From NCBI RefSeq assembly GCF_006345805.1, contig NC_043000.1:14012001-14076000 (forward strand): DNA of 64,000 nucleotides, in the 5' to 3' direction. Made by a program: the position numbers and the translations under genes. The DNA is from Octopus sinensis (lineage: Eukaryota). Below the pieces are notes generated by a model. That model saw only the letters and a program-made list of their open reading frames with translations, was not told where the DNA came from and ran no database searches. Below, piece by piece: positions 12,302 to 51,507 of the stretch; the first letter of the stretch is position 1, and each line of letters starts with the position of its first letter.

Positions 12302-12360
12302 AACTGAATGGTTACTTATGATAATATTGTTCTTGTGACTAGGGGTCATCCTCCTGTGAA
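12302..12360 (+). other. Probable 5'UTR portion of the zinc-finger coding exon, after a splice acceptor
   Basis: Polypyrimidine tract and acceptor ttttttttctgtatttttcag ending at 12301; an in-frame TGA at 12319-12321 supports ATG 12361 as the start. Possible upstream non-coding exon 12077-12112 with a GTAAGT donor at 12113. Confidence 0.55.
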
Positions 12361-15165
12361 ATGGATTTACCAGGTTCTAGTGCCTTTCACCAAAGTTTCC
12401 TGAACACCTCCATGATTTCAGATGATAGTCCAACTGTCCAGAAGCGAGTCTCATATGGTGGTGAATCCTTTCCTTATGGAATCAGTGGTGTTGCCATGCC
12501 CGATTATGGCTATAGTGGCAGTGTTTATAATTATTCACGAAAGAGTTTTCCCCGAAAATCACGGGTATGTTGTTACTGTGGAAAATCTTTCACCAGGTCG
12601 ACAACGAGACGCTATCACGAAAAGCGATGTCCACTTCTACGTGCTGCTGGTAGTTTAGTGGAACAGAATGAACAACCTGTTGATAATGGAGCAACTGCTT
12701 CAACTGATCACAAGTTTTATGCAATTGGATCACAAAGCCCAGCGTCACTCACCAATTCAATTAGTCCGGCTTCTGATTCTTGTCGTGCTGGAGTTGAAGA
12801 TGAACTTTCAAAACAGCCTGTCACAAATCGAAGACGGTCATTTGACCAGGCCAATTTGGAAAGTGTGTTTGTTAAACAAGAACCTTCTGAGTTTCTCAAT
12901 ATGTATGTTAGGACTTCAACACCACGGACAGGTTCATCTGAAAATAACCCATATGTAAATTCTGACAGTAATAAACAGGAATCTTCAAAGCCATTGGTAA
13001 ACTTTCCGTCCCAATCCAGTAGCAGTAACAAAGATGTAAATGGCGAATCGGTCATTACATCTACACCTAGGTATGATCAGGCAGGAAATGTTGAATCACA
13101 CTCAAATTTGGAGAGTGATTCTCTTAGAACGATTAGAATTGAGAAAACAGAGACAGATGTCCCAAAAAATGATGGTTCAGAAACCAGTATATACAAAAAC
13201 CATTCTTCAACACATTTGGACCAAATGTTGCAAGGTGATGCAACCTCTTTGTCAGCTCGTCCTCATAAATCTTCACGTTTACAACAGTCAACTCAGGGAG
13301 CTTCCCATTCATCAGCTTTTAGAATTGAGCGAAGAGTATCTAAAATGATAAACAAACATCGATGCGGCTTGTGTGGCAAGCTGTTTGATACCCAGAAACA
13401 GCTTCAAATGCATGAGCAATTACATACTAAATTTAGGCCATATACTTGCCGCTTCTGTGGTCAGCGATTTACGAAATCAGCAATGAGAATTCGTCATGAG
13501 CGTTCTCATCTTGGGGAAAAGCCATTTATGTGTATTGCGTGTGGGTCCTCATTTACTCGAAACTATAGCCTGAAACTGCATGAGCAGCGCCGGCATTCTC
13601 GAGGTCCTTGTATCTGTACAGATTGTGGAAAGGTGTGCGAGTCTTTAAGCAGTCTCAAATTCCACACTCAGAAACATGAATCTTTTGATGCTTTTGCTGC
13701 TAAAGACAACAACAACAGCACCCAAATGGAACCTACAGCAACTGGCATAACCAGCTTTTCTTCAACTACACCCAAAGCTGCAGAACAGCAGGATAATCCG
13801 GAATCCCTTAAAAAGGAGTCTGATCCACCAAGTGATTCTGGATCTGTCAGCCAAACTAGCAACAAAAAACTGCCAGATGACAGTAGTAAGACTACTGTAG
13901 CACCAAGTACAGGAGAGGAAGATGATGCTAAGGCTAAGGTGAAATGTAATGATTGTGGTAAGGAGTTCACACGACCTTACTTGCTCAAATACCATATAAA
14001 GGTACATGCTGGCTTAAAACCATTTGAGTGTCCTATCTGTGGGAAAAGATTTGGATATAAAAATAACATGAAATCTCATCTGAAACTTCATGCTGGAATT
14101 AAACCATATCAGTGCTGTGTCTGTGATGCAAAATTTACACGAGGGTCTACGCTTCGAAGGCATGCTCGTAAGCATGGCATCATGGCTACATCAATATGGG
14201 ACCTGTTTTCAAACTCTGGAATATCACAGTCACAAGCATTCAGTGCCAGTAATCTAGCCAAAAAAGTGGCTGCTGCTGCTGCTTCATCACTACACACTAG
14301 TAAAACGAACTATGCTTCTCAAATCGGGGTCATTCCAGATAGTTCTGACCCAAATCGTCAGAACTATGATTCACATTCAGCCGAATCCTCCATACCTCAA
14401 TCTATAGCCAACGGCAGTATATACCTAAACTACAAACACTCAGCAACTCAACATACATACCATTCACCTTTAGCTACCTCAGCAGTCATCCAACCCACTT
14501 CTTCCGTTACCTCATACTCCCCAAACTCTCCTCCACTCACTGCCCTCAATCTCAGCATAAAAAACAAACCTGATGTGCAGTATCAAAGCTCAGACGTGCT
14601 GAGGACATCCTGGAACCTGCAGCGGCCTACCTCCTCATCTACAAGCATATCTTCCAATTTGGAAAGCAAAATGTCCACTCCATTACTTTTACAAATAAAC
14701 AACAGTGAACTACTGCCAACCAAGCATTCTGCTTATAAGGTCTCTCAACCCAAAGCTGAATATCGTGATTTCGAAGCTCAAACTAATTTGTGTGATTGTA
14801 GCCGTACAATTGAAGATAACGTCCAGGCCAACATGTATGGCGCTCACTTGCCAGCATCCCGTTTGATTAAACAGGAGAGCAGCTTACGTTATAGTCCAGT
14901 TACAGTGTCAAATGGGACATCACCGGTGAAATTTGACAAAATAGGAAGCTCGTTTAATGGAGAAACAGTTTCTTCTTTGCTCACAACTGGACGTATGTTT
15001 GTCTGTGAATACTGTGAATGCTACTTCAAGGAATATGCCATGTATCGCATCCATCAAAAGCTGCATGTTAAAGATGAGAGCCGGCCCTATCTTTGTCCAG
15101 TCTGTAATGAGGACTGTCATGATAGGATATACTTTAGTTTGCATATTTCAGAACATTTAAAGTAG
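12361..15165 (+). CDS. Multi-cluster zinc-finger transcription factor (934 aa): C2HC finger, 4 C2H2, 3 C2H2, and a C-terminal Ikaros/Hunchback-like finger pair
   Basis: Uninterrupted 2805-nt ORF. C2HC finger 12568-12630; C2H2 fingers 13363-13677 and 13945-14175 with H-LGEKPF, H-AGLKPF and H-AGIKPY linkers; terminal pair 14998-15156; SUMO-type VKQE and IKQE motifs; ALNLS motif. Confidence 0.95.
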   Translation: MDLPGSSAFHQSFLNTSMISDDSPTVQKRVSYGGESFPYGISGVAMPDYGYSGSVYNYSRKSFPRKSRVCCYCGKSFTRSTTRRYHEKRCPLLRAAGSLVEQNEQPVDNGATASTDHKFYAIGSQSPASLTNSISPASDSCRAGVEDELSKQPVTNRRRSFDQANLESVFVKQEPSEFLNMYVRTSTPRTGSSENNPYVNSDSNKQESSKPLVNFPSQSSSSNKDVNGESVITSTPRYDQAGNVESHSNLESDSLRTIRIEKTETDVPKNDGSETSIYKNHSSTHLDQMLQGDATSLSARPHKSSRLQQSTQGASHSSAFRIERRVSKMINKHRCGLCGKLFDTQKQLQMHEQLHTKFRPYTCRFCGQRFTKSAMRIRHERSHLGEKPFMCIACGSSFTRNYSLKLHEQRRHSRGPCICTDCGKVCESLSSLKFHTQKHESFDAFAAKDNNNSTQMEPTATGITSFSSTTPKAAEQQDNPESLKKESDPPSDSGSVSQTSNKKLPDDSSKTTVAPSTGEEDDAKAKVKCNDCGKEFTRPYLLKYHIKVHAGLKPFECPICGKRFGYKNNMKSHLKLHAGIKPYQCCVCDAKFTRGSTLRRHARKHGIMATSIWDLFSNSGISQSQAFSASNLAKKVAAAAASSLHTSKTNYASQIGVIPDSSDPNRQNYDSHSAESSIPQSIANGSIYLNYKHSATQHTYHSPLATSAVIQPTSSVTSYSPNSPPLTALNLSIKNKPDVQYQSSDVLRTSWNLQRPTSSSTSISSNLESKMSTPLLLQINNSELLPTKHSAYKVSQPKAEYRDFEAQTNLCDCSRTIEDNVQANMYGAHLPASRLIKQESSLRYSPVTVSNGTSPVKFDKIGSSFNGETVSSLLTTGRMFVCEYCECYFKEYAMYRIHQKLHVKDESRPYLCPVCNEDCHDRIYFSLHISEHLK

Positions 15166-18100
15166 GAAGGCTAGCTCTTAAGTTTTATTTTGATGCATGC
15201 TATTGCAATAATGTTGGCACATCCTACCTCGACACATTTTTCGTCTATTCTAGATGAAGCATAGAATAAGAAAAATGGAAAGAAAATAATTTTTTTTTTT
15301 TAGTTTTTTTTTTGTTTATACATATATATATTTTTTAATCTAACATATTAGTTTGTGTATGTTTGTGTGCATGTATATATATATATGTGCGTGTGTGTTT
15401 TCATATAAACATAGACACACTCATATATCCATGCATGCACATACAGTCATACATATACATAAACATTTTTTCATCATAATTTTGCTAAAACATGTTAAGC
15501 AAGTTGGGGGACTATTTTGGCTTATTAGAAAGCTGATAACTAATTACAAATTTTTGGCTAAGGTTTTATGAAAAATGTCATTATTCATTTTGTATTATAT
15601 AATCCAGTTGCTATATATATATATATAAGAGATCTTTCCTTCTTCACTCTTCACATGCATCGACATCTCTCTTTCACTGTTTTGACTATTTCTCTGCAAT
15701 CTGCACAGCTGTGATCGACATCATCTTTGATTATTAGATCTTTCACTAGGACAGATCTCAGAAATTGGTCACTATAGCTTGACTTTATTTAGTTAAGGCA
15801 GAAAGGATTCAGGGATAATTTGTCTGCAAACATATTGGTTCCCTCCCCTTATTATTTTTTTACAACCCCCCTCCCCATTTTTGTATTTTTTTTCTCCTCC
15901 CCCACAACAAACTCTTTTTCCTCTTCCTTCCCTCCTCCTAACTCTTACTTTCTTTTTATTTCTGTACTCTCTTCTTTACTGCAATTCTATTTATTTAAGT
16001 AACACTTGGGATGTACAGTATTGTGTCTGTAACAATAACCTATAGTGGAGGTGTTGGTGGTGGTCAACTGTGCAGTGTACACCATTGCACTGTAACTAGT
16101 TACCATTTAATTGGCAGGGAGAATTCTAAATTAAATGAACAAAAGCACAAACCACTTATTGATTGCTTGTTCTAAAAACTACCTCTGTGAACTATGTTTT
16201 ATACTTACTCTATGTGATTTTCTGTTTTTATTTAATCTTATTTCCATTCTTACTTTCTTTCTCGTCATGACTGTGGAAGGGAATTTATTAAGTTTTTCTT
16301 TGTTCACACCAGACCTGGTCTTTACAAATATCACAGAAATGATTTTTGATAGCATCACACACACACACACATATTATTAAACTTTTATTTTTAAAATTAA
16401 ATCTTTATAAAACCAACCTCTTGTTTACTCTTAGAATATCTTAAAAAAAACTTCAGACTCTTCAACATAAGTCTCATCAACTACTAACAGAATTAAATAC
16501 AGATACACATACATAGAAATATACATGTGCACATGTATATAAAATATAAAAGTATCATTATGTGTGTGTGAGCATGCATTATATATATAAATATATATAA
16601 GCGAGAAAGAAGCAACCCCACATTATTGTATTGTTAAAACAGTATAAGTTTGTTTTTGGTGCATCTAAGTTAGGTACCATATTCAAGTAAATTCATTTAA
16701 ATTAACTTGAATCTTTATTGCTTTATAAATATATATATATATATATATATGTATTTTAATCTATAATTGTTAGTTAGACAAAATATATTCTATTTTACCT
16801 GAGTCTCATTGGAGGTTGAATATATTTTGTCAAATTAACAATTATGGATTAAATATTTTTGTTCATTCTCAGACATGTCTTTGAGTGCTAACTTGATTCT
16901 AAGTGTGGCCAGACATAGCTTCTTTTTGAACTTGAATCATTAGTCCAACAAAATATACTGTTTTGCCCATGGCCAAAGGTAAAACACAATATATTTTGTC
17001 AGATTAAGGATTAAATATTTGTAACTCTCAGACTTGTCTTTGAACACTTTCTTCTAAGTGGCTGAACATAGCTTCTTTTTGAATTCATCACACATACACA
17101 TTTGAATTTTTATTTTCATATATATATATACATATATTAAACCCTTTCTTTGTCCCACAAAAGTTGTTGAGTCAGCAAAACAGTTGAAGACGCAAACTAA
17201 ATACTTCAAAGTTTAGTTTCAATCTTTTACACTCTAGGTTCAAATCTCACCTGGGCTTTGAGTTTGCTCTCATTTATTTAGGGTCGTTAACATAAGCCTT
17301 CCCTATTAAAATTTTCTTTAACCTTGTACCTAGTTGAAAGAAATCAACCTCATTGATATAAATATCTCAACTATTTTATATATCATAATTCAAAATTAAC
17401 TGTTAATATTTTTTAAAACTGACCACATTTCTAATAATCCATATTAAATAAAATCATTTTCTATGTTAATTATTCTTTTCTCTTATTCTTTTTTTAATAT
17501 AGATTGGTACAAAATGCTGTTTTCATTTTTCAAATTTAAATTTGCATATTTTTTTTTACTCATTTTATATTAGTAAACCATTTCAAAGAAATGAGCAAAT
17601 TAACTATAGTTTAATTAGAAACTAAGATAATTATTGTGTGACACCCCCAGCCCTTCCACATCATTGGTTTATTTTTAAAAATTCTTCTGAAACTAACCAT
17701 CATTTACAGAATCAACATTGTTTTATTAACCCCATATGATGAAATCAGGACCCTCATTAGATTTCAAACCTTTCACAGTCATTTGTTATTATTATTATTA
17801 TCATTATTATTTATTTTAATTTTTAAAAAATTTTTTTATTTTGCATAAATGGGAACCAAGTTTTCTCGGTCTTGTCATGTTATCAGCCACAATCCAAATC
17901 AGATCTTTAAATCTCGTTTCTATGCCCCCCCCCCCGCTTACCCAACTCCTCTTATTCCCCCCCCTCTCCCAGTTTAAAAGGCACACAGTATATATATATG
18001 TATAAACACACACATACACACACGTGCGTGTGTTTGTGCGTGTGCAATTATACGAAGCTGATGATGCACGGCTTATTACTGATAATACTTTTGTGTTGAC

Positions 18101-20050: not shown

Positions 20051-22091
20051 TTATATTGTGTATGTGTGTATACATATATATATATATCGCGTAGATGTAT
20101 GCATGATATGTAATATATAACGTCTGTGTGTATTGATTTCGAAGACTTTCAATGCAACAATTTAAATCCGGATTAATCTTAAAAAACGAACTCTCTTCAA
20201 ATTTTAGTCTTGGTTAATAATGCTGTGTTACTAAATACTGTATAAATTGCCATTGTGTAGATGAGTGATTGTGTATGTGTGCATGTGTGGTGTAATTTAC
20301 TACTTGTTCAAACAAGGTGTACAGATTTCTAAACAGGCTATTTTGATGAGTCACATTTTTCTGAGACCACTTTCTTTTAGTCACGTTAACCTGCTCCTTT
20401 TTGTATTATTTGGCTTTTTGAAGTGCAAATGAGCTGATAAAATCAAATGCTGTTACAGATGTATATACTTAAAACTCTTCGCTAAAGAACCATGCTTTGC
20501 GTGACTGACTTCTTATTCTAAGCCCCTCCCTACCAATGATTTTCCATTTAAGCAACCGTCCACTCTGAGAAGAACCCAGCTCCACATGGAAGAGAATACT
20601 TGTGTTGATGAGTGGGCTTTCGCAGAGCTAGAATTTTGGCCAGAATCTGGGGAGAAAAAAAATTAACTGTTGTTGGTAGACTTTTTTTTCTATGCACATA
20701 AACGACATACAAACAAGTTTCTCAACCCTCCACTTTTAATTGAAACTCTATTTTAAGATGAACATTTCTACTGCTGACTAAAAGAGAGCAAGCCAGGGAG
20801 GTTGAACTGATCTCTCTGGATTCCAGGAGAAAATGCTGCAACATTCCAAACTTAACTGCTCTGTAAAGTAACAAAAAACAGAAAAATAGCATTTTTCCAA
20901 TCAGTATTTCACGTACAACAGCTGCTAATGAGACGTGATGGGGGATAATGTCCAGTGCAAGGGTCTCTTAAAGACTTGCCGATCCTTGCTCCTTCCTCCC
21001 TCTCATCTTCTCTAGTCTTCTCCTGTTGAGACAAACAAACAATAAAGGGTGTGGCTATTTCAGTGATCATTCTACTTTCTGCATGTATGTCTCTATATGT
21101 GTAGAATTGAAAATATATGTATATAGTGATATTTTGATATGAGACTCCTCTACGTATATCAAATGAAACTGCAAAATACAATGCACTTTTCCACTGCATT
21201 GCTATTTTCTATCATCCTTTGCTATTCCAGTTCATTGAAGTTTTTTTTTTTGTTTTTTTTTTTAAATCTTTAGTCGGGGGGTGTTGTTCACTCACTACCC
21301 CACTAATATATAGTCTTAAAAGTTGTGCAGTAAAGTAGTTTGGTTTGGTTTGGTATAATAGTATTGCTGATGCTGGTGACACTTTGCTGTGAACTTCGTG
21401 TGGAAAACGAGTTAGTTGAATTAGTGGCATTCAATGTGAATGCTACCAGGAGCTGAAGTTGTTTTTGGTTTTTTTTTTTCCTTATTAGGTTATACAACAG
21501 TCAGTTCTGGCACCAAAGTGTTTGTTACTTCCCCCAAAGTCACCAAATCTGTAATTGTACCCCCTCCCCATCCAAACTTATTACTGTTACCATTTTCAAA
21601 TGTGACCACATTTCTAATAATCCTTATCATTATTATTATTATTATTACAAACTTTTTACAAATAGATTTTATTTGCAATTCTCTTTTCAATGGTATATTC
21701 TGGGGTTTCTGTTTATTCTATGGTCATTGTTTAGTATTTTTATAGTTGAAATGCTAAAAGATAGGATGTGGATTTTTTTTGTGATTCTGAAGACAAGTTC
21801 TTTGATAGTCAATGAGCTGGATGGAACATGTGATTTCTGTAGCAATTTTATGTACACAATTTGTACAGTCTTTTTAAATCCCCTTTTTTTCACTTAACAG
21901 TTTCTCAGGTCATGTCTTAATTATAATACATGTGCATACACTACACTATGCTACTCTCTTTAACAATTACGTTTCTAATTATTATTCAGTTGATCATGTG
22001 CTTTTTTTTTCTCTTCCTATCCTTGCTAATCTTCCCACCCCTACAAATCATTTCATCCCCCCCACAACTATTTGTGTGTGTGAAATAAATA

Positions 22092-22136
<45 letters not shown>

Positions 22137-23150
22137 ATATAAATATATATATATGAGTGTATGTATGCATGTATTTGTGGGTGTATGAATATGTATGTGT
22201 ATATGTATACACACACACATATATATATATATACATACATACATATGCACACACCCACATTGATGCATGTGCATGTATGTATGTATATATATGAATCTAT
22301 ACCATGAGAGCTACAATGTACATTAAAAGCCATAAATATCATATTTTATCTAAGTTTATTAACATACCCAAGGCAGGAAGCTATAAAAAAAAAAAAAAAC
22401 TTTTTTCTTCCTTTTAATTTAATTTTATTTCATTATTGATTTCCAAGAAAGAATGTCTGCCTGCTGACTGAAATTTTTGTTTTCGTTTATCCAACCCATT
22501 TGTTTATAATTATAATTATTATTAATCATTATTATCATTTCTGAAATATATATACATATATATATATATGTATATGTAAAATACTTGAGATGGGAATGTT
22601 TATTACAATCAGGGATTACAGTTTGAACTCAGGGACCTTGGCACCAGTGTCACTCACCATCATCAGTGTCACATCACTAGTGTCACCATAACACATCTGG
22701 ATGCTATTATTGGCTCCATGTTATAACAAAAGAAAAACACACACACAAACACAAACAAAAGAATGCAATGCTAAGTTTATTATATTTGTATGTATTTCCC
22801 GACCCGTTTCACTCTTCACACTTGTATATCTCTTCACTGCTGTTCCAGTCCATCATCCATTTAGCCTACTATCCAGTCCATAGCTAAATAGCACCTCTCT
22901 AGTGCACAGAATATGTGAAACCTATGAATTGCAGGGCTTCCATTTGAATCCTTTGTTATTTTCCACCTGCACTCATTAACCAGATGAACTAAGATTGTCA
23001 CTTGCAATGGCTCTATAAAACTGTTTACATAGAGTTGGCTTTCCAAAGTAATGCAGTGTTTTGGTAGTTATCCTTTAATGCCAAAACCACTAAGTGGATT
23101 GGTCAAAAGAACGCACAGTTGTTATTGTTATTGCTATTAAGGTGATGAGT

Positions 23151-27529: not shown

Positions 27530-28375
27530 CAGGGTTTTTCAAAAAATTTGAGATGTAAATATCTCAGAAACTACACAAAGTAAATGAAACTAAACAGGCT
27601 TAATGTTGAGCAACATAAGAATTATTCCTCCAAATTTGAATGAGAAATTCAAATATATATGGATTCCATGAACGATTTCACAAATGTTCAATATGAGCAC
27701 CGCCTGAGACACGACAAACATGGTAGTCCAGCTCCTCTCCAACACGCTGCAGTATGTCTTGGGTAACAGTCTCCAGTTGCAGTAGTGATTCTCTGCTCGA
27801 GTTCCTCTAGGTTTGCAGGAATAGGAGGCGGGCATAGACCGGGTCCTTCGCATAGCCCCATGTTTGCACTTTCGCTTGTCATTTGCCGTTATAACCAGCT
27901 TGTAGGGTTTCATTAGCAAGCGTATATCCTCAGGAAGTGCCAAACTCATTGGAGGAATCTGGGTTTCCAGACTTGTTCTTCTTATGGACTTCTTGGGGCT
28001 TCGCAAGAGTTTTTGGCAAACCCACTCGACCGTCTGTTCCGATGTTAGTGGTCGTCCAGATCCTTTTGTCCTGCACAGATAGCCTTCCGCTTTGAATTTT
28101 TTGTGCCATGTCCAAATCTGCATTGCCATTGGTGACTCTTTAGAGAACTCTCTCATGCACAGTCTTGTTCGACTGTGTTCGAGCATACTCCAACACATAA
28201 AACACCTTTTCTCTTCCAGTGAATGCCATTTCTTTACCTGAAAAGATAAACATATCAAACATTACACATAAAATTTTGAACTGTTTCTACATATGCTGTT
28301 AAAATTTGAAGCCATTTGAACAAGAACTGGCAAAGTTATATTGCGAAATGATATCAAATTTTTTGAAATACTCTG
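27530..28375 (-). mobile_element. Internally deleted Tc1/mariner-superfamily DNA transposon (DUF4817-type N-terminal HTH)
   Basis: TA target duplication (27528-29, 28376-77); TIRs CAGGGTTTTTCAAAAAA / CAGAGTATTTCAAAAAA. Frameshifted transposase from ATG 28229: MAFTGREKVFYVLEYARTQSNKTV, then ...WHKKFKAEGYLCRTKGSGRP...RSPKKSIRR...MKPYKL, then the C-terminal PANLEELEQRITTA segment. The catalytic core is missing. Confidence 0.9.
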
Positions 28376-37784: not shown

Positions 37785-38962
37785 CAATTATCACTAACAA
37801 TGATCCCAATACAGGATAGGATCATTGTTGTTGTTGTTTAGCCCTAAGTAAGTCCCTAATAAGTAGAAATATGATGAAAGGCATAGCAGCTATGATGATA
37901 CTGTCTTTTTGTGTGTGTCCTGATGGATATTTGGCTGATATATTTAGCAGGTCTAGAAAACTATATAGAGGCTCCTTCATTGGATCACAGTTACTAATGG
38001 TCTCTTCAAAAATGATCACAAAGCAGTAATTAATGAGTATGCTCACTAATTAACAACCAAATTAATATTACAACTTCTAACCTTACCTTTTTTATACCAA
38101 CTTGCCTGAAACTACCCATAGTTTAATGAAAGTGTAATGAACTTAGGATATGAACCTAATTCTCTAAATTATCAGACCATCCCTATACATTTGTCATGTG
38201 CATGTTTTATTTACCAACTAATTGACTTGCAGGAGATTATGCCACTAAGTTAGAACAAAAGTGAGTGTCCTTGAGATTTGTGAGCTTTTCTCTAGTGATA
38301 AGCAAAGCCCTTTGAAGATCAAGCACACAGTGTTGAGGGCAATTTAAGAATGCAAACCAACTCTTGCCAAACAAGCCAGAACAATCACAGAAGTTGAGAC
38401 TCACCAGAGAGCAATACATGATTCTTGGTACTCGTGTGACGATGTTAGGAAGAATCATTTGACTACCACAGACTAATTTTCCTCAAGTCTCCCTACAGAG
38501 ATCAAGGGCAAAGCCTCGAGGACTTTTTGATAAACTCACATCTTGAATTTTGATTCAAGACCAATTTTTTCCTGTCCCTTGAGTAATGACCATAGAATTT
38601 AGACACTATGAAATGTTGATTCCTATATCCGAAGTTTCTCTACAAGTATCTGAAAATCCATATGTACACACACACACATTGCAATTTAATTTGTGTAAAT
38701 GTTAATACAGATATTTTTTTCCCCTCTATCCATTTGTTTTCTCTCCTCATTCCTTTCTGTAGTAGAGTGTAGGCTTGAAACGTCAAAGATTCTTCCATTT
38801 TTTCCAGAGTTCCCTTATCTAGGGAACAATAAACAAATGGAAAGAGGGGGGAAAAAAGTATCCGCATTAACGTCTGTATGTGTATGTATGTCTGTGTATA
38901 TATATATATATATATTTAATTTGTGCATACAAACATCCATACACACACATACATACATACAT

Positions 38963-39041
<79 letters not shown>

Positions 39042-39648
39042 TATATATATACAGACATACACACAGCCTTTCTTTAAATAAATATATTACAAAATGTTTG
39101 CAAGTTTTGTTCTTGTTAACAACAGCCCAAACCGTAATAATCTCTCACCACAACCAGGCAACTATTCATGAGACAAAGGTGGCCCATACAAACAAGCTAT
39201 CTTACCACAACATACTGGTGACCCCAACTAGAAAAGGATAGCACTTCACTGATGGATCAATAATTTCATGGATTATTCCTCTGTACAGACTGGAGAAAGT
39301 CCATGCTGCTAAAAATCTCCATGGAAATTCAGGAGGCTATAGAGGAAGCTGTCCATTTGATTGGATTTTCTCTTGGAAACATAGGTATTTCAAGCTTTTT
39401 TTTTTTTTGCTGTAGCAGTGGTAGGTAAATGATATTCAAGAAATCCTAACTTCAAAAGACTCATCACAGGAATACACATGTTTGTAAGAAAAATTCAAGA
39501 TGATCTGCTAGCTGGAGTCAGACCTGGCTACTTGTCAATAGGATACAAAGACTTTGTTACATTAGGAATACTGAGATTAGCTTCAAAGGTCAAAGGTTAC
39601 AGTCCCAAGACGATGAAGAGATACTTTTTTTCATAAGAACATCGTACT

Positions 39649-42747: not shown

Positions 42748-45449
42748 TTAAAGAGTAAACTTCACCTCTTGATTAGAATTTTGTCTTTGAAGCGATTCAG
42801 TTTTGGGGAAATCTATCTCCACATAGGTCAGAGGTGAAACACTTTTTTCTTCAGCACCAGAAGAATGGCGACTTTTAATGGAATTTGGAGACTTCTGGTG
42901 AAGGTCTGAACATTCTGTTAGTGTTTCTGTTGAGCTCAGTTCAAGAGAAGCATAGTTCAGTTCCGTCTCACAGCTTGAGCTATGTTTTAAAGAAGACAGA
43001 GGGTTGCCTGCTATGGGTGGAATCAAACAAACTTCTGTATAGCTGTGACGGCCCTGCAGTCCCAAACTCTCAGACTTTTTCGGTTGTGCCGAGTCAGAAG
43101 CAATACTTGAACAACTGTTGTTTTTTGTCATGAAAGACTGTTCAGAGGAGTGGCTGTCACTTTTGGAGGATCTGAAACATTCCCCATCACTTTTCTTTGA
43201 AGGCCTTCGCTCAACGTTAACAAAACTTTCTGAATTCTCTGCCATGTGGTTAGACTGGTCTAATATTTTCATGTTAGACATCATTTCGGAGCACTGATCA
43301 ACATTTCTATCTTCCTGTCGGCTTTCATCTGAACCAGTTTCACTAACAATTTTGGGAACCTCAAAGAGTTTTTCTTGAGAAAGAACTTGATTGGAATTCT
43401 CCAATCTTGTCGATTCCTTTTCACTGGCAGAAATCTCATCTGTATCTACCAGCCAACTACTCTGCCTCAACGGTTTCTTATATATCTGCTCTTCTTGGCA
43501 GTTTGACCATGACATTGGGTTCAAAGGTTTCTCATTTCTACCTGGTGCTTGACTGAATGACAAATTAAAATACTCTGCATTTTCAGTTTCAGTTGGACAA
43601 CTGACAGGCGAGGTTGATGTTGAGGCAGATTTTGCATGCAATGAAGTGGAAGTTGTCTTACAAGAGTCTATGGAAGGTGCTGTATACTGGGCAAAACTAG
43701 ATGCAGCAGGTGGGGAGTAAAGGTCAGTTTTCACAGGCATTGATGAATGTCGTTTGTGAATCACTTTCATAATATCACGATTACATCTTTTTGTACTTTG
43801 AAGGTTATCGTTGCAAGAAGTGGAAAGACTTTGTATATATTCAATGCCCGAAGGAACAGTACATGGAGCAGATGAGGGCTCGTGTCTGTAATGCTGTCTG
43901 GGGTCAAACACAACGTAAGGCTCAATTTCAGCAGCTTTTGCTTTTTCACAGTTGAAAGGAAAAGAATTTGAGAAAAATGGATCAAAATTAGAACTGAACA
44001 TACTCTGAGGCCTTTTGGCATCAGACTTTCCCAATATAATGTCACTGTCAAATTTCTCTTTTCGAGAAGTGCAGCTATCATTTACTTTTTTAGAAAGTGT
44101 ATCATTGTCATATTTTTTCATGGCATTGCTTGCGTTGTAAGAGAGTTCAATATAGGCATCTTCTACATCGGAAGGCTTTTCTTTATGGTTTCGAAGCCCA
44201 TAAGTAGGGCAGGAAATGTTACTTTCATCATATGGGGGCCTGATCGGTTTGGGAAAATCCATGTTAAAATAAGGATCCCCAGCACTTTCCTGCTTACGAA
44301 GGGTTGCCATTGCCTGAGACCTGTTATCATGAGAGACACTCTTTGTGCGTCTAACACCCAAATCAGATGGGACCCGCTCAGTTTTAGAACGTAGACTTAG
44401 CCTTTCTGAAAACCCTGAGTGCGTACATGGTACATACCGATCGACATCTTTGTGCCAACTATTACTACCTGAGTCTGATTCATCATCAGAATTAGATTTT
44501 ATATGAGAAACTACCTTGTCAGGAACAGGTCCTGGTTTAAGAGAGTGATCAGGTTTCCTTTGTCCATAATACTTATCAAATGGGTAACATTGACAGCTGG
44601 AATATTCTCCCAGGCTCATTGACATCACGGGTGAGTTAGTTTTCATATTAATTACATCACACACAGGTGAATGTTTTGGACTGGATGAGAAACCAGTCAT
44701 CTCCAGGTAATTTGACATTTCCCCACCTGCATTTGACATGGAATTTACTGGAAGATGTGCGTGAAAAGATTTAGACATTCCCCCTTTATTCTTCCCCATC
44801 TCAATGGCATCGTTGTTCTTTTTACTGTGGTATTTCCAATGTGTGCCATCAGGGCCAGGTAAGAAAGCTAACGAGTAAGGATCCTTTTGTAAAGATTCCT
44901 GGGACATTTTGCGAAGAAGTTCTTCTGAAGTAGTCCTTACCGATTCAAAAGAGCTCCGTTTAAAGCACCTTGAGCTGTGACTAGACGATCTTGGACGATG
45001 ACCCTGAGTCAAAGATTTTCCCAAGCTGGACGCTCTTGGCCTGCATCCATAGCTATCACTAGCTGTGCGAGGACGACCAAATTCCAACTCGGAAAAATCA
45101 GAATCTTCCGACTTGTATGAGCCACAAGGTGGACTGTTGGAAGGAAGTGAGTGATTGGATGATGTGTTGGAGGTCTTTTGTTTCTGTGAGATCAGGTGTG
45201 GGGCACTGGAACATCGACTGTTATCCATCATTCCTAACATAGCTAGTTTTGCATCACAACCTTGTGGCTTCAACACCGTCTTTGGTTGAGGTTTGCATCC
45301 AACTGAATAAGAACGTTTTGGTATATCCTTCTCAACAGATATAGTCTCATCAGATATCAGATAACTGTGACCACGATTAGGACGTAAGCTGCTGCTACCT
45401 TTGGGACTGTGGCCAGGTGGAGTCATTTGGAGATAATGTTCTTCTGGGC
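42748..45449 (-). CDS. IRS: Insulin receptor substrate, last coding exon (2702 nt)
   Basis: Acceptor ttttctgcAG at 45451-45450, phase 1, stop TAA at 42750-42748. Encodes YLQM, YLEM and YFNM (PI3K YxxM), RPRxxS repeats, and the C-terminal SHP2-type pair LNYASLEL / LTYVEIDF (compare IRS1 LNYIDLDL / YASINF). Confidence 0.92.
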
Positions 45450-45534
45450 CTGCAGAAAATAAGAGAGAAAAGTCAGTGATGAAAGTTGTTCTGATGGTAG
45501 AAGGGACAGTAATAGGTTTAATGAAAATTAGAGA

Positions 45535-45658
45535 CACACACACACCACACAACACATAAACACATACAGATCACATAAACACACACACACACACACAACA
45601 CACACACACACACCACAACACACACACACACACACCACAACACACACACACACACCAC

Positions 45659-45700
<42 letters not shown>

Positions 45701-45730
45701 ACAACACACACAACACACACACACACACAC

Positions 45731-45770
<40 letters not shown>
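45535..45770. repeat. Complex (CA)n / CACACCACAA microsatellite filling most of a 388-nt IRS intron
   Basis: Directly visible; it is the source of several spurious VCVC ORFs. Confidence 0.95.
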
Positions 45771-45837
45771 TCATATAAACACGCATGCAAGCCCACAAAC
45801 ACAATTTCTTCCATAAAAAATACAAAATACCACTTAC

Positions 45838-46023
45838 TTCCACTTTCTTTAACAGTGGGTAAACTTGTGCCTGTAGGCCCCATATCAACATAGGGAGCAT
45901 CATTGACTGGGCTACTAGCCTGAGGGGAGAGTTGTTGTTGCTGCTGTTGAGGTGTCGGCTGTGGCACAGAAACCGCTTTACCTGGCTCCATCATCACATA
46001 AGAACTTACATCACCGCCATAGT
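45838..46023 (-). CDS. IRS: IRS coding exon (186 nt, phase 1-1)
   Basis: Acceptor ttttcttttAG, donor A|GTAAGT; encodes YGGDVSSYVMMEPG...polyQ...PYVDMGP (two YxxM motifs). Confidence 0.9.
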
Positions 46024-46560: not shown

Positions 46561-46724
46561 CCAGTAAGGCGATGCTGGTGGCACAAATGAGATTACCAAG
46601 TAATCTCACTAGTAAGACAAAAGGAATAAGAAACAGGAAAAAGCTCTCTTGACTTAGTGGAGAGGGCAGGGAGGGGCTATGAGAGGGAGAAGAGACAGCT
46701 TTATGTCAAGGACAAGAAAAGATG

Positions 46725-47256
46725 TCTCCGTCTGGAAGCTGTTAAGCGACGTGCAACCAAAAGAATACCCTCCATCAGGCATTTGCCATATTCTGAACGC
46801 CTTACTTCCCTGGGCATGGACACATTGAAACTCCGACGTCTGGCAGCTGACTTGGCAGACACCCATAAAATTATCAACCATCGTACAAACAATAACTCTG
46901 AGCACCTTTTCAAACTCCACCCATCTAACACCCGTGGACATATTTACAAAGTAAGAAAACAGCACAGCTCCCATGACTTCAGGAAACATTTTTTCATGCT
47001 GAGAATTGCTGAAGCATGGAACAAACTGCCGGCATCAGTTGCTTGTTGTCGGAGCACTGCATCCTTCAAAACTTCCATGCTTCCTGAGATTCGCCAACTT
47101 GATTTTCTCTCCTCCATACACATGCAAGCATGTATCTGACTCATTGTTCGCTTTCCAGACATTTCTACATTACTGCATGTACTTTATATGCACTTTCTGA
47201 CAAATTGTGGTGCACCTGAGCACTGTATACAATAATTTCATTATTATTATTATTAT
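46725..47256 (+). mobile_element. CR1-clade LINE 3' fragment (5'-truncated) with 3'UTR and (ATT)n tail
   Basis: LEAVKRRATKRIP...YSERLTSLGMDTLKLRR...TRGHIYKVRKQH...RKHFFMLRIAEAWNKLP is the canonical CR1 ORF2 C-terminus; no internal stop. Confidence 0.9.
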
Positions 47257-49560: not shown

Positions 49561-50060
49561 AATTAATTAGTTAGTTAGTTAGTTAGTTAATTTGGCTCAA
49601 AAGCAAATAGCAAGGCCATGTAGGGGGACATGGAGTTAAGTACAGGGTGGTGTTCATGTAAAGAGTTCAGGCCACTTGAGGTCCAGGGAGACTTTGAACA
49701 AAGCGGTCGTTGGCATCTTCACCATCTCGTCTGGCAGCTTGTTCCACGGATCTGCAACCCGGACGGAGAAAGCTCCTCTCCTTCGATTGAGACGAAATCG
49801 TCGCAGGTAGAGCTTTTCGGAATGACCCCGCAGCCGACGCTCTGGAGCAGGAGTGAAGAACAGCTCTTTCGAGAGGTTACACTTTCCGCTTATGATGTTG
49901 TGAGCGAGAATGAGATCACCACGGCGTCGTCGTTTTTCTAAAGAATAAAGGTCGAGCGTCTTCGGCCTTTCTTCATAAGACAAATTTTTGAGACTATGAA
50001 CCATGCGGGTAGCCAGCTTCTGGACTCTTTCGAGATGCTGTATGTCTTTAAGGGCTGTGA
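49561..50060 (-). mobile_element. Second CR1-clade LINE family, 3' fragment with (TAAC)n tail
   Basis: DIQHLERVQKLATRMV...LSYEER...LEKRRRRGDLI...LRGHSEKL...AFSVRVADPWNKLP; open frame; tail seen as (GTTA)n on the plus strand. Confidence 0.9.
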
Positions 50061-51507
50061 CACTTCTTGGAACGACTGTATTAAGTGATGTCATATTTTT
50101 GGGAAGAGCTAATAACAGTGATCGTGGTTTTTTTCAGTTTGGAACTCCTTATCCAATTTTTTTGTTTAAGAGAAATTCTATACAAACCTAGTTAAAAATT
50201 TTTTTTTTAATCTCCAGAAACTTGAGTGTGTGTGTGTGCGCCCGCACACACATCTACAAGAATACACGTTAAATCGAATCGATGAATAGAGTTATCTTCC
50301 TTGCAACAGCCAGGGTAGGTAACTCATGTAAAACACAGCTGGTTTACATTTCCTTCTATTTTTATTGCTTTTAGTAGTGGCATAGTTGTTTACTTGAGGC
50401 AATTACAGAGATAATAGAATTAAAATGAACCAGAGGAATTCAAATAGAAGGATCTTTGAAGTGTTAAGATATCCTACTAACACCGCACTAATTTAATCAA
50501 TACAGCCATATGACAACAATAAATGGCCCTACGGACATAAAAAAAAATATATGGTTCAGACAGGGAAGAGGAAATTCCATGACCGTTTGAACGGACTGTT
50601 TGAGGGAAAGAAAACATGATTGTAAGGTTACAGCGGTCGGCAGCAATACATTAATATAATGAGAGCTGGTCTGAATACGTTGCAAAAGAGTGGACTTCAC
50701 AAAAGGAAGTGGTGTTAATCTAGGCAGGGAATTAGATCACCTTAGAATATTTACAGTTATTTCGTTTGGGGATTTGGTTTGCAAGATTCTTTATATGAGT
50801 TCGTGTGTTGAAGCATATTCTATTGTGTCTGGGGAGAGTCATTTTCTTTTTGTACCTTATGATGTAACACATTCACTGGTAAAATTTTCACTTATTTCTT
50901 ATTTTTATTTTCCCGAAATTTTCGTTGCCTCTTGCAACCTTTTCAATAGTCTTGACTGTCCGTTATTTACACTACGTTCCCTTTTGTTTGTTTGTGCACA
51001 TGTGTGGGTCAGTGTGTGTGTGTGTACCTATACATGCATGCAGTTAACACAGCTTACAGTTAATCTGACAAAAACAGCTATGGGCCAGCCTATACAGCCA
51101 CTAAAAGACAACAGTTGTTGTTCAGCCAATATGATCACAAAAAGGCAGCAGCTAATGGTCATCCTGTAGCCTACAAAGAGAACAGCTATAGGCCATCTTG
51201 AACAGTCACATGAAGATAACAGGTTTGTCAGTCTATACAGACACACTAACACAAGAGCTTTGTATCAGCTTATATAAGCCAGACAATAAGTTATGACAGC
51301 TTATATAACCACATATACAGAAAACAATAGTATGAGGTCAACAAGAAAACCTCTGAATGTTTTGTTGTCTCAGGGAACGAATGTCACGTTAAAATATATG
51401 ACTAGAAAAACAAAATGAAATGGTCACAGCTGGATCACCTTTGATAAAGGCTGACCTGGGATAAATAGTTATATAAAAAAAATGATTAAAAAAAAAAATC
51501 TACTTAC

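Follow-up and report, generated by a model that had tools for sequence, protein, structure and literature searches.

The 64,000-nucleotide stretch of octopus DNA analysed here (contig NC_043000.1, positions 14,012,001 to 14,076,000; the window) carries a gene for a C2H2 zinc-finger protein of 934 amino acids (aa), whose two terminal fingers have a specific sequence kinship to DZFs. These are the C-terminal two fingers of the Ikaros/Hunchback family, which mediate homo- and heterodimerization (PMC12506653; PMC5393059). The protein has ten fingers in the layout 1 (C2HC) + 4 + 3 + 2, and its full-length orthologues are found in cephalopods, gastropods and bivalves. In our judgement it is reasonably likely to be a modular, mollusc-wide C2H2 transcription factor in which the middle finger clusters bind DNA, and the terminal DZF homologue would most likely mediate protein-protein contact.

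The 934-aa protein ends in ...FVCEYCECYFKEYAMYRIHQKLHVKDESRPYLCPVCNEDCHDRIYFSLHISEHLK*. Its terminal sequence at 14998..15165 on the plus strand reads FVCEYCECYFKEYAMYRIHQKLH-VKDESRP-YLCPVCNEDCHDRIYFSLHISEHLK and is followed by the stop, exactly as given in a preliminary description of this DNA made from the sequence alone. That description had also called the pair DZF-like. Because a database profile search was swamped by proteins with very many zinc fingers (poly-ZNF proteins) and word searches returned fragments only, we tested this claim locally. Provisional sequences of the DZFs of IKZF1 and Drosophila Hunchback served as references, and the former is corroborated by the database fragments P0242 and P0243 (84-90% identical). 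As background we used 3790 pairs of adjacent C2H2 fingers and ~4650 single ones from 150 poly-ZNF proteins and from generic matches of a full-length search.

The likeness of the terminal pair to DZFs goes beyond chance. Scored with a DZF profile, the terminal pairs of the mollusc family reach a median of 34.9 bits, compared with 33.4 bits at the 99.9th percentile of the background; the window pair scores 35.5 bits, a value that 2 of the 3790 background pairs attain. When the same profile was run against the PDB, the best single stretch among 177,635 sequences gave 28.1 bits, which is exceeded by 47 of 49 family members and by the window pair (35.8 bits in this search). Pairwise BLOSUM62 scores to P0242 have a background median of 50 and a maximum of 95, and the family median is 98, with 36 of the 49 members above every background pair. 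Alignment of the family's fingers 9-10 to the DZF profile with hhalign yielded a score of 73.7 (E = 2.5e-16; probability 98.8%), whereas the remaining four adjacent pairs in these proteins, an internal control, score 33-43. The window pair is identical to IKZF1 at 22 of 56 positions (~40%). In Pomacea, where a 7-residue linker allows a gapless alignment, 20 of 48 positions are identical to IKZF1 and 19 of 48 to Hunchback. The IKZF1 and Hunchback DZFs themselves share 22 of 54 positions, level with the mollusc pair against either.

The similarity is concentrated in features that are rare among ordinary fingers. Helix positions -1, 2, 3, 4 and 6 of finger 9 are E, A, M, Y and I in 39 of 49 members, the window included; the corresponding residues are D, V, M, Y and I in Ikaros and D, V, L, Y and I in Hunchback. 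This five-residue signature (E/D, A/V, M/L, Y, I) occurs in none of 4652 background fingers. The motif Y-x-I-H, which finger 1 of the Hunchback CF1-CF2 pair has as well, is found in none of 4552, and Tyr at the canonical Leu position in 1.5%. In finger 10 the core Phe is replaced by Cys, as in Hunchback (CGExC), while Phe at position 4 and D-R/K at positions -1 and 1 agree with Ikaros (D-R and Phe in its second finger). The pattern C, D, R/K, F is present in 46 of 49 family members, and 6 of 4652 background fingers combine a core C/S with Phe at position 4. The pair is nearly invariant across cephalopods, gastropods and bivalves. With Ikaros (IKZF1-5) F5-F6 it further shares its place at the extreme C-terminus and the separation of the DNA-binding from the terminal finger domain (PMC5393059). 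Judged by these sequence features, the terminal pair is quite probably homologous to DZFs.

The gene model is straightforward. The ATG is preceded, 7 codons upstream, by an in-frame stop, and a polypyrimidine tract with an AG acceptor precedes the open reading frame (ORF) at ~12301, so the whole coding sequence sits in one exon behind an intron in the 5' untranslated region (5'UTR). Two bivalve-like metagenome loci likewise have an intronless coding sequence. Gene calls in the octopus assemblies GCA_006345805.1 and GCA_951406725.2 include the identical product of 934 aa, and neither assembly has another called gene within 10 kb of it. We take the first to be Octopus sinensis and the second O. 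vulgaris. A six-frame scan of the 64 kb found exactly ten C2H2/C2HC patterns, all of them inside this ORF. The scan recovered the upstream arrangement of one C2HC, four and three C2H2 fingers that had been described, and bore out the statement that the gene stands alone; membership of a tandem array of zinc-finger (ZNF) genes is thereby ruled out, since the window holds the fingers of one ORF only. The features of the gene are given below, with order and the predicted local distance difference test score (pLDDT) taken from AlphaFold2 (AF2) models.

12302..12360 (+): 5'UTR segment that opens the coding exon after the splice acceptor (ttttttttctgtatttttcag); read directly, with the acceptor presumably used.
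12361..15165 (+): complete coding sequence of the ten-finger C2H2 protein, 934 aa, stop included; a single uninterrupted ORF.
12469..12651 (+): N-terminal conserved block FPYGxSGVxMPxY...PRKSRxCxYCGKxFTRSTTRRYHEKRCPLLRAA, nearly invariant in 16 molluscs; ordered in AF2 at aa 51-98.
12568..12630 (+): finger 1 (C2HC), within the N-terminal block.
12871..12882 (+): VKQE, which matches the SUMO consensus psi-K-x-E; retained by 16 of 16 orthologues; pLDDT < 50.
13363..13677 (+): fingers 2-5, four C2H2 fingers with Krueppel-type linkers, presumed to bind DNA; best PDB matches are generic poly-ZNF proteins and CTCF.
13945..14208 (+): fingers 6-8 with an HGI..S.WDLF tail, the longest conserved block of the family; generic PDB matches, ordered in AF2.
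14542..14556 (+): ALNLS, an invariant short linear motif that resembles PLNLS without the Pro; pLDDT < 50.
14779..14799 (+): QxNLCxC, a conserved motif (QVNLCC in most molluscs), predicted disordered, ahead of the terminal pair.
14956..14997 (+): conserved short helix E-x-x-S-x-L-x-x-x-G-R/K-M/L before the terminal fingers; a helix in both AF2 models.
14998..15162 (+): fingers 9-10, the DZF-like terminal pair by the sequence tests; two beta-beta-alpha fingers in AF2, pLDDT ~82.
15004..15066 (+): finger 9, C882..H902.
15094..15156 (+): finger 10, C912..H932.

In the AF2 model of the whole protein, only residues 51-98, 331-442, 524-616 and 866-934 are predicted with confidence; some two thirds of its length, VKQE, ALNLS and QVNLCC included, is predicted to be disordered. 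Fingers 9-10 stop 2 residues short of the C-terminus and are separated from finger 8 by ~270 residues of predicted disorder. Across the family, conservation is highest in a handful of blocks: the N-terminal C2HC block, the four-finger cluster, fingers 7-8, VKQE, ALNLS, QVNLCC, and the terminal pair with its preceding helix. Within the N-terminal block, the stretch at 12469..12510 forms a family-wide motif, FPYGxSGVxMPxYxY, ahead of the C2HC finger. Fingers 7-8 (KRFGYKNNMKSH / AKFTRGSTLRRH) hardly vary and presumably form the core DNA-recognition module. In the QxNLCxC motif, whose octopus form is QTNLCDC, Q807 and C811 do not vary, C813 is conserved to at least 90%, and in the alignment of the pre-terminal helix L6 and G10 are at least 90% conserved.

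The preliminary description had suggested a family that was possibly specific to cephalopods, and this suggestion is overturned by full-length orthologues throughout gastropods and bivalves. A full-length search returned ~50 related proteins of 890-1270 aa. The orthologue of Argonauta hians is 89% identical to the octopus protein; those of gastropods (Haliotis, Patella, Gigantopelta, Littorina, Nucella, Pomacea, Aplysia, Bulinus) and bivalves (Mya, Dreissena, Mercenaria, Ruditapes, Mactra, Pinctada, Saccostrea, Magallana, scallops, Tegillarca and unionids) are 33-38% identical at 96-99% coverage, with E-values of 1e-130 to 1e-145. Their database names are all automatic ('zinc finger protein 236-like', '585A-like', '717-like', 'uncharacterized'). 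Non-mollusc matches in the same search cover at most ~39% of the query at 23-30% identity and include neither the N-terminal block nor the terminal pair; orthology to ZNF236 is ruled out by this coverage. No non-mollusc orthologue was found in searches that were weak there, being made with short queries and swamped by poly-ZNF proteins or fragments. In an exhaustive HMMER search with the terminal-pair profile, the top 150 matches, ranked by summed score, were all giant poly-ZNF proteins. Word-index searches, run with a chimera of the N-terminal block and the terminal pair and with an alignment of the Ikaros and Hunchback DZFs, returned short fragments only. Since full-length IKZF proteins, thousands of which must be expected to contain the query words, were not returned, these word-index searches are unusable as an argument for absence outside molluscs.

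When metagenomes were scanned with the two most conserved peptides, only two more family members came to light, both bivalve-like. They lie on the marine metagenome contigs L003 and L004, each of which has a complete, intronless, bivalve-like copy of the gene; these 'metagenome' assemblies therefore contain animal DNA. Another metagenome fragment of the family (P0238) bears the name 'phage FluMu protein Com', and further ones of the same cluster 'rubrerythrin', which are mis-annotations. One gastropod-like protein of 1229 aa from ENA (P0054) has kept the N-terminal block, while its terminal pair is degenerate (YQCKFCDCQFSRESYYRTHQQLH...CFSCQKDCRTFTGYTDHIVQH) and scores 18.8 bits with the DZF profile, which suggests relaxed constraint on the pair in that lineage. 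We found no description of the mollusc family in the literature searched or in database names, and the DZF peptide string had no match in the literature. The family is a hitherto unnamed bearer of a DZF-like pair; DZF-bearing factors as such were already known.

Two kinds of short linear motif had been put forward as signs of a repressor. ALNLS is present at the position described (14542-14556), with A728, L729, L731 and S732 invariant and N730 at least 90% conserved. Its designation as a PxDLS-like CtBP site is weakened, since Ala takes the place of Pro at position 1 in 16 of 16 aligned members. The CtBP motif is P-phi-D-phi-S, and PLNLS is used by Hairless and Senseless (PMC6777938); with Ala in place of the Pro, the CtBP reading is only a guess, and recruitment of CtBP by the octopus protein seems rather doubtful. 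Of the two SUMO consensus sites, VKQE (aa 171-174) is retained as psi-K-x-E by all 16 aligned orthologues, at a pLDDT < 50, whereas IKQE (aa 836-839) is confined to cephalopods. VKQE is a candidate site of SUMOylation.

A working model of the factor would run as follows. A single coding exon would give rise to a sequence-specific factor built of four ordered modules that are spaced by long disordered linkers. DNA would be read by the middle finger clusters, above all by fingers 7-8. The terminal pair would act as a protein-contact module, because the helix face with which DNA-binding fingers touch bases carries acidic or hydrophobic residues in this pair (E, A, M, Y, I); it may form homodimers and perhaps also pair with further DZF proteins, for instance molluscan Hunchback. 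VKQE and ALNLS in the disordered linkers would probably be regulatory or cofactor-docking sites, and repression, possibly through a recruited corepressor, would be the likeliest output.

Several points weigh against this model. The octopus pair lacks the HMG[CY]HG that ends finger 1 in Ikaros (as HMGCHG) and Hunchback and has H-Q-K-L-H (H-x-K-L-H) instead. Its inter-finger linker is 9 residues long (VKDESRPYL) compared with 7 in Ikaros and Hunchback, and its second finger closes with H-x3-H where the Ikaros spacing is longer. Sequence searches of the PDB with the terminal pair and with the DZF profile found no DZF structure. The background consists mainly of poly-ZNF proteins and not of other atypical finger pairs, the Hunchback reference DZF received no corroboration from any tool, and the DNA-binding fingers used as references below (Hunchback MF1-4, Ikaros F1-4) are provisional sequences. 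C. elegans HBL-1, a bona fide family member, does not homodimerize through these fingers (PMC12506653), so that sequence kinship is no guarantee of the function. Dimerization via the octopus pair would accordingly be rated as likely but not assured. A rather unlikely alternative is that the terminal pair is an ordinary divergent C2H2 pair that came to resemble a DZF by convergence or chance, on a lineage-specific Krueppel-type ZNF with another contact role (DNA, RNA or an unrelated protein). The missing HMG[CY]HG is compatible with this alternative, and so is the reverse test: with the mollusc profile as query, the Ikaros and Hunchback DZFs score 41-42 bits, within the top 0.2-0.5% and not above the best generic pairs (42-47). 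The AF2 monomer of the terminal 67 residues shows two classical fingers behind a short helix (pLDDT 82), and Foldseek with this model, like the PDB sequence searches, retrieved generic fingers only (best E = 0.02). What argues against an ordinary pair is that several independent, background-rare features agree in both fingers, that the extreme C-terminal position matches that of DZFs, that the pair is so little changed across three mollusc classes, and that the protein's four remaining finger pairs show much less likeness to DZFs. As to the linker, the caenogastropod orthologues have one of 7 residues and align with no gap.

The likeness could also extend to the whole protein, as an old paralogue or highly diverged co-orthologue of Hunchback/Ikaros that inherited the layout while its DNA-binding fingers diverged beyond recognition. 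The N-terminal C2HC finger, H-x3-C ending in RC, presumably resembles Ikaros finger 4, and the intronless coding sequence behind a 5'UTR intron is presumably the arrangement of Drosophila hunchback as well. The multi-cluster layout, 1+4+3+2 with a four-finger cluster, parallels that of nine-finger Hunchback, with which the family shares a protostome distribution; HBL-1 has 9 fingers, four of them DNA-binding and two C-terminal (PMC12506653). The DNA-binding fingers themselves speak against such descent, and the preliminary description had rightly judged them unlike those of Hunchback or Ikaros. Measured against Hunchback MF1-4, the four-finger cluster (2-5) falls at the 0.5th percentile of generic four-finger windows, less similar than nearly all of them, and it falls at the 32nd percentile against Ikaros F1-4; the three-finger cluster (6-8) falls at the 6th and 57th percentiles, respectively. 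Hunchback MF against Ikaros F1-4, the positive control, reaches at least the 99th. PDB searches with both middle clusters placed poly-ZNF proteins, CTCF and ZBTB proteins first, and chains of Ikaros, Helios and Aiolos were absent from the top 60 matches. The best single PDB stretch for the C2HC finger is the C2HC finger 11 of CTCF, at 16.7 bits only, and no Ikaros-family chain. By the percentile test the DNA-binding fingers are not homologous, and membership of the whole protein in the Hunchback/Ikaros family therefore fails, which leaves common descent of the entire protein quite improbable. Nor is the family likely to be the molluscan orthologue of an already named bilaterian ZNF beyond the reach of our searches, and so not distinct, a reading to which we give very little weight. 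It draws on the fact that the searches were swamped or confined to fragments, so that absence outside molluscs is weakly supported; it has to contend with the partial, low-identity non-mollusc matches that miss the N-terminal block and the terminal pair, with source names that are all automatic, and with a metagenome peptide scan that added only two family members. A more specific proposal is that molluscs have a second DZF-bearing factor beside Hunchback, either an ancient paralogue that goes back to one ancestral gene with it or a fusion of a DZF to another finger array, which heterodimerizes with Hunchback via fingers 9-10. We consider this unlikely, though it would be of some consequence if it held.

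The modular factor with a protein-contacting terminal pair, which we favour, can be set beside the known carriers. It differs from Ikaros in having ten fingers in four modules rather than 4+2, in its DNA-binding fingers, which are not Ikaros-like, and in its candidate cofactor motif, ALNLS where Ikaros has PEDLS. TRPS1 provides an established precedent for a DZF-type terminal pair on another DNA-binding chassis: its DNA-binding domain is unrelated to those of Ikaros and Hunchback, and it binds DNA via a GATA-type finger. The pattern of such a finger (C-x2-C-x17/18-C-x2-C) was not found in the 934 aa of the octopus protein, so a TRPS1-like protein is ruled out. The nematode HIL genes, lineage-specific zinc-finger factors grouped with Hunchback and Ikaros by finger organisation (PMC3962486; PMC12506653), are a precedent for phylum-restricted members; compared by description only, they have other finger counts and are not orthologous on the evidence here.

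Long (TG/CA)n and (TA/CATA)n microsatellites lie at 15300..15450, directly 3' of the zinc-finger gene, and at 21986..22342, 38900..39100 and 45520..46000; the microsatellites of the window yield spurious ORFs rich in Cys/Val or Tyr/Ile. On the minus strand, 42748..45555 is an uninterrupted Ser-rich ORF of 935 aa that found no Pfam match (E <= 0.01) and is likely to be a large coding exon belonging to an adjacent gene, encoded on the other strand. At 46657..47139 (+) and 49654..50094 (-), two ORFs (146-160 aa) have similar tails (...AWNKLP and ...PWNKLP) and no Pfam match; we take them to resemble C-terminal remnants of a non-LTR (long terminal repeat) retrotransposon ORF2. A 222-aa ORF at 27590..28258 (-), also with no Pfam match, presumably resembles a decayed transposase N-terminus.

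DZFs are among the few cases in which classical C2H2 fingers came to serve as a selective module for protein-protein dimerization. Temporal identity and the choice of lineage are what their known carriers regulate, namely Hunchback, the Ikaros family, TRPS1 and the nematode HIL genes. If the terminal pair does not dimerize, the octopus gene would be merely one more lineage-restricted ZNF. A further, mollusc-wide carrier with an unrelated DNA-binding array would show that the DZF module has been recombined or has survived in an old paralogue, and would supply studies of DZF specificity with ~50 natural variants of the dimer interface sequence. It would also be a concrete candidate partner or competitor of Hunchback in spiralian development, and, should heterodimerization with Hunchback prove true, spiralians would have a partner network analogous to that of vertebrate Ikaros, Helios and Aiolos.

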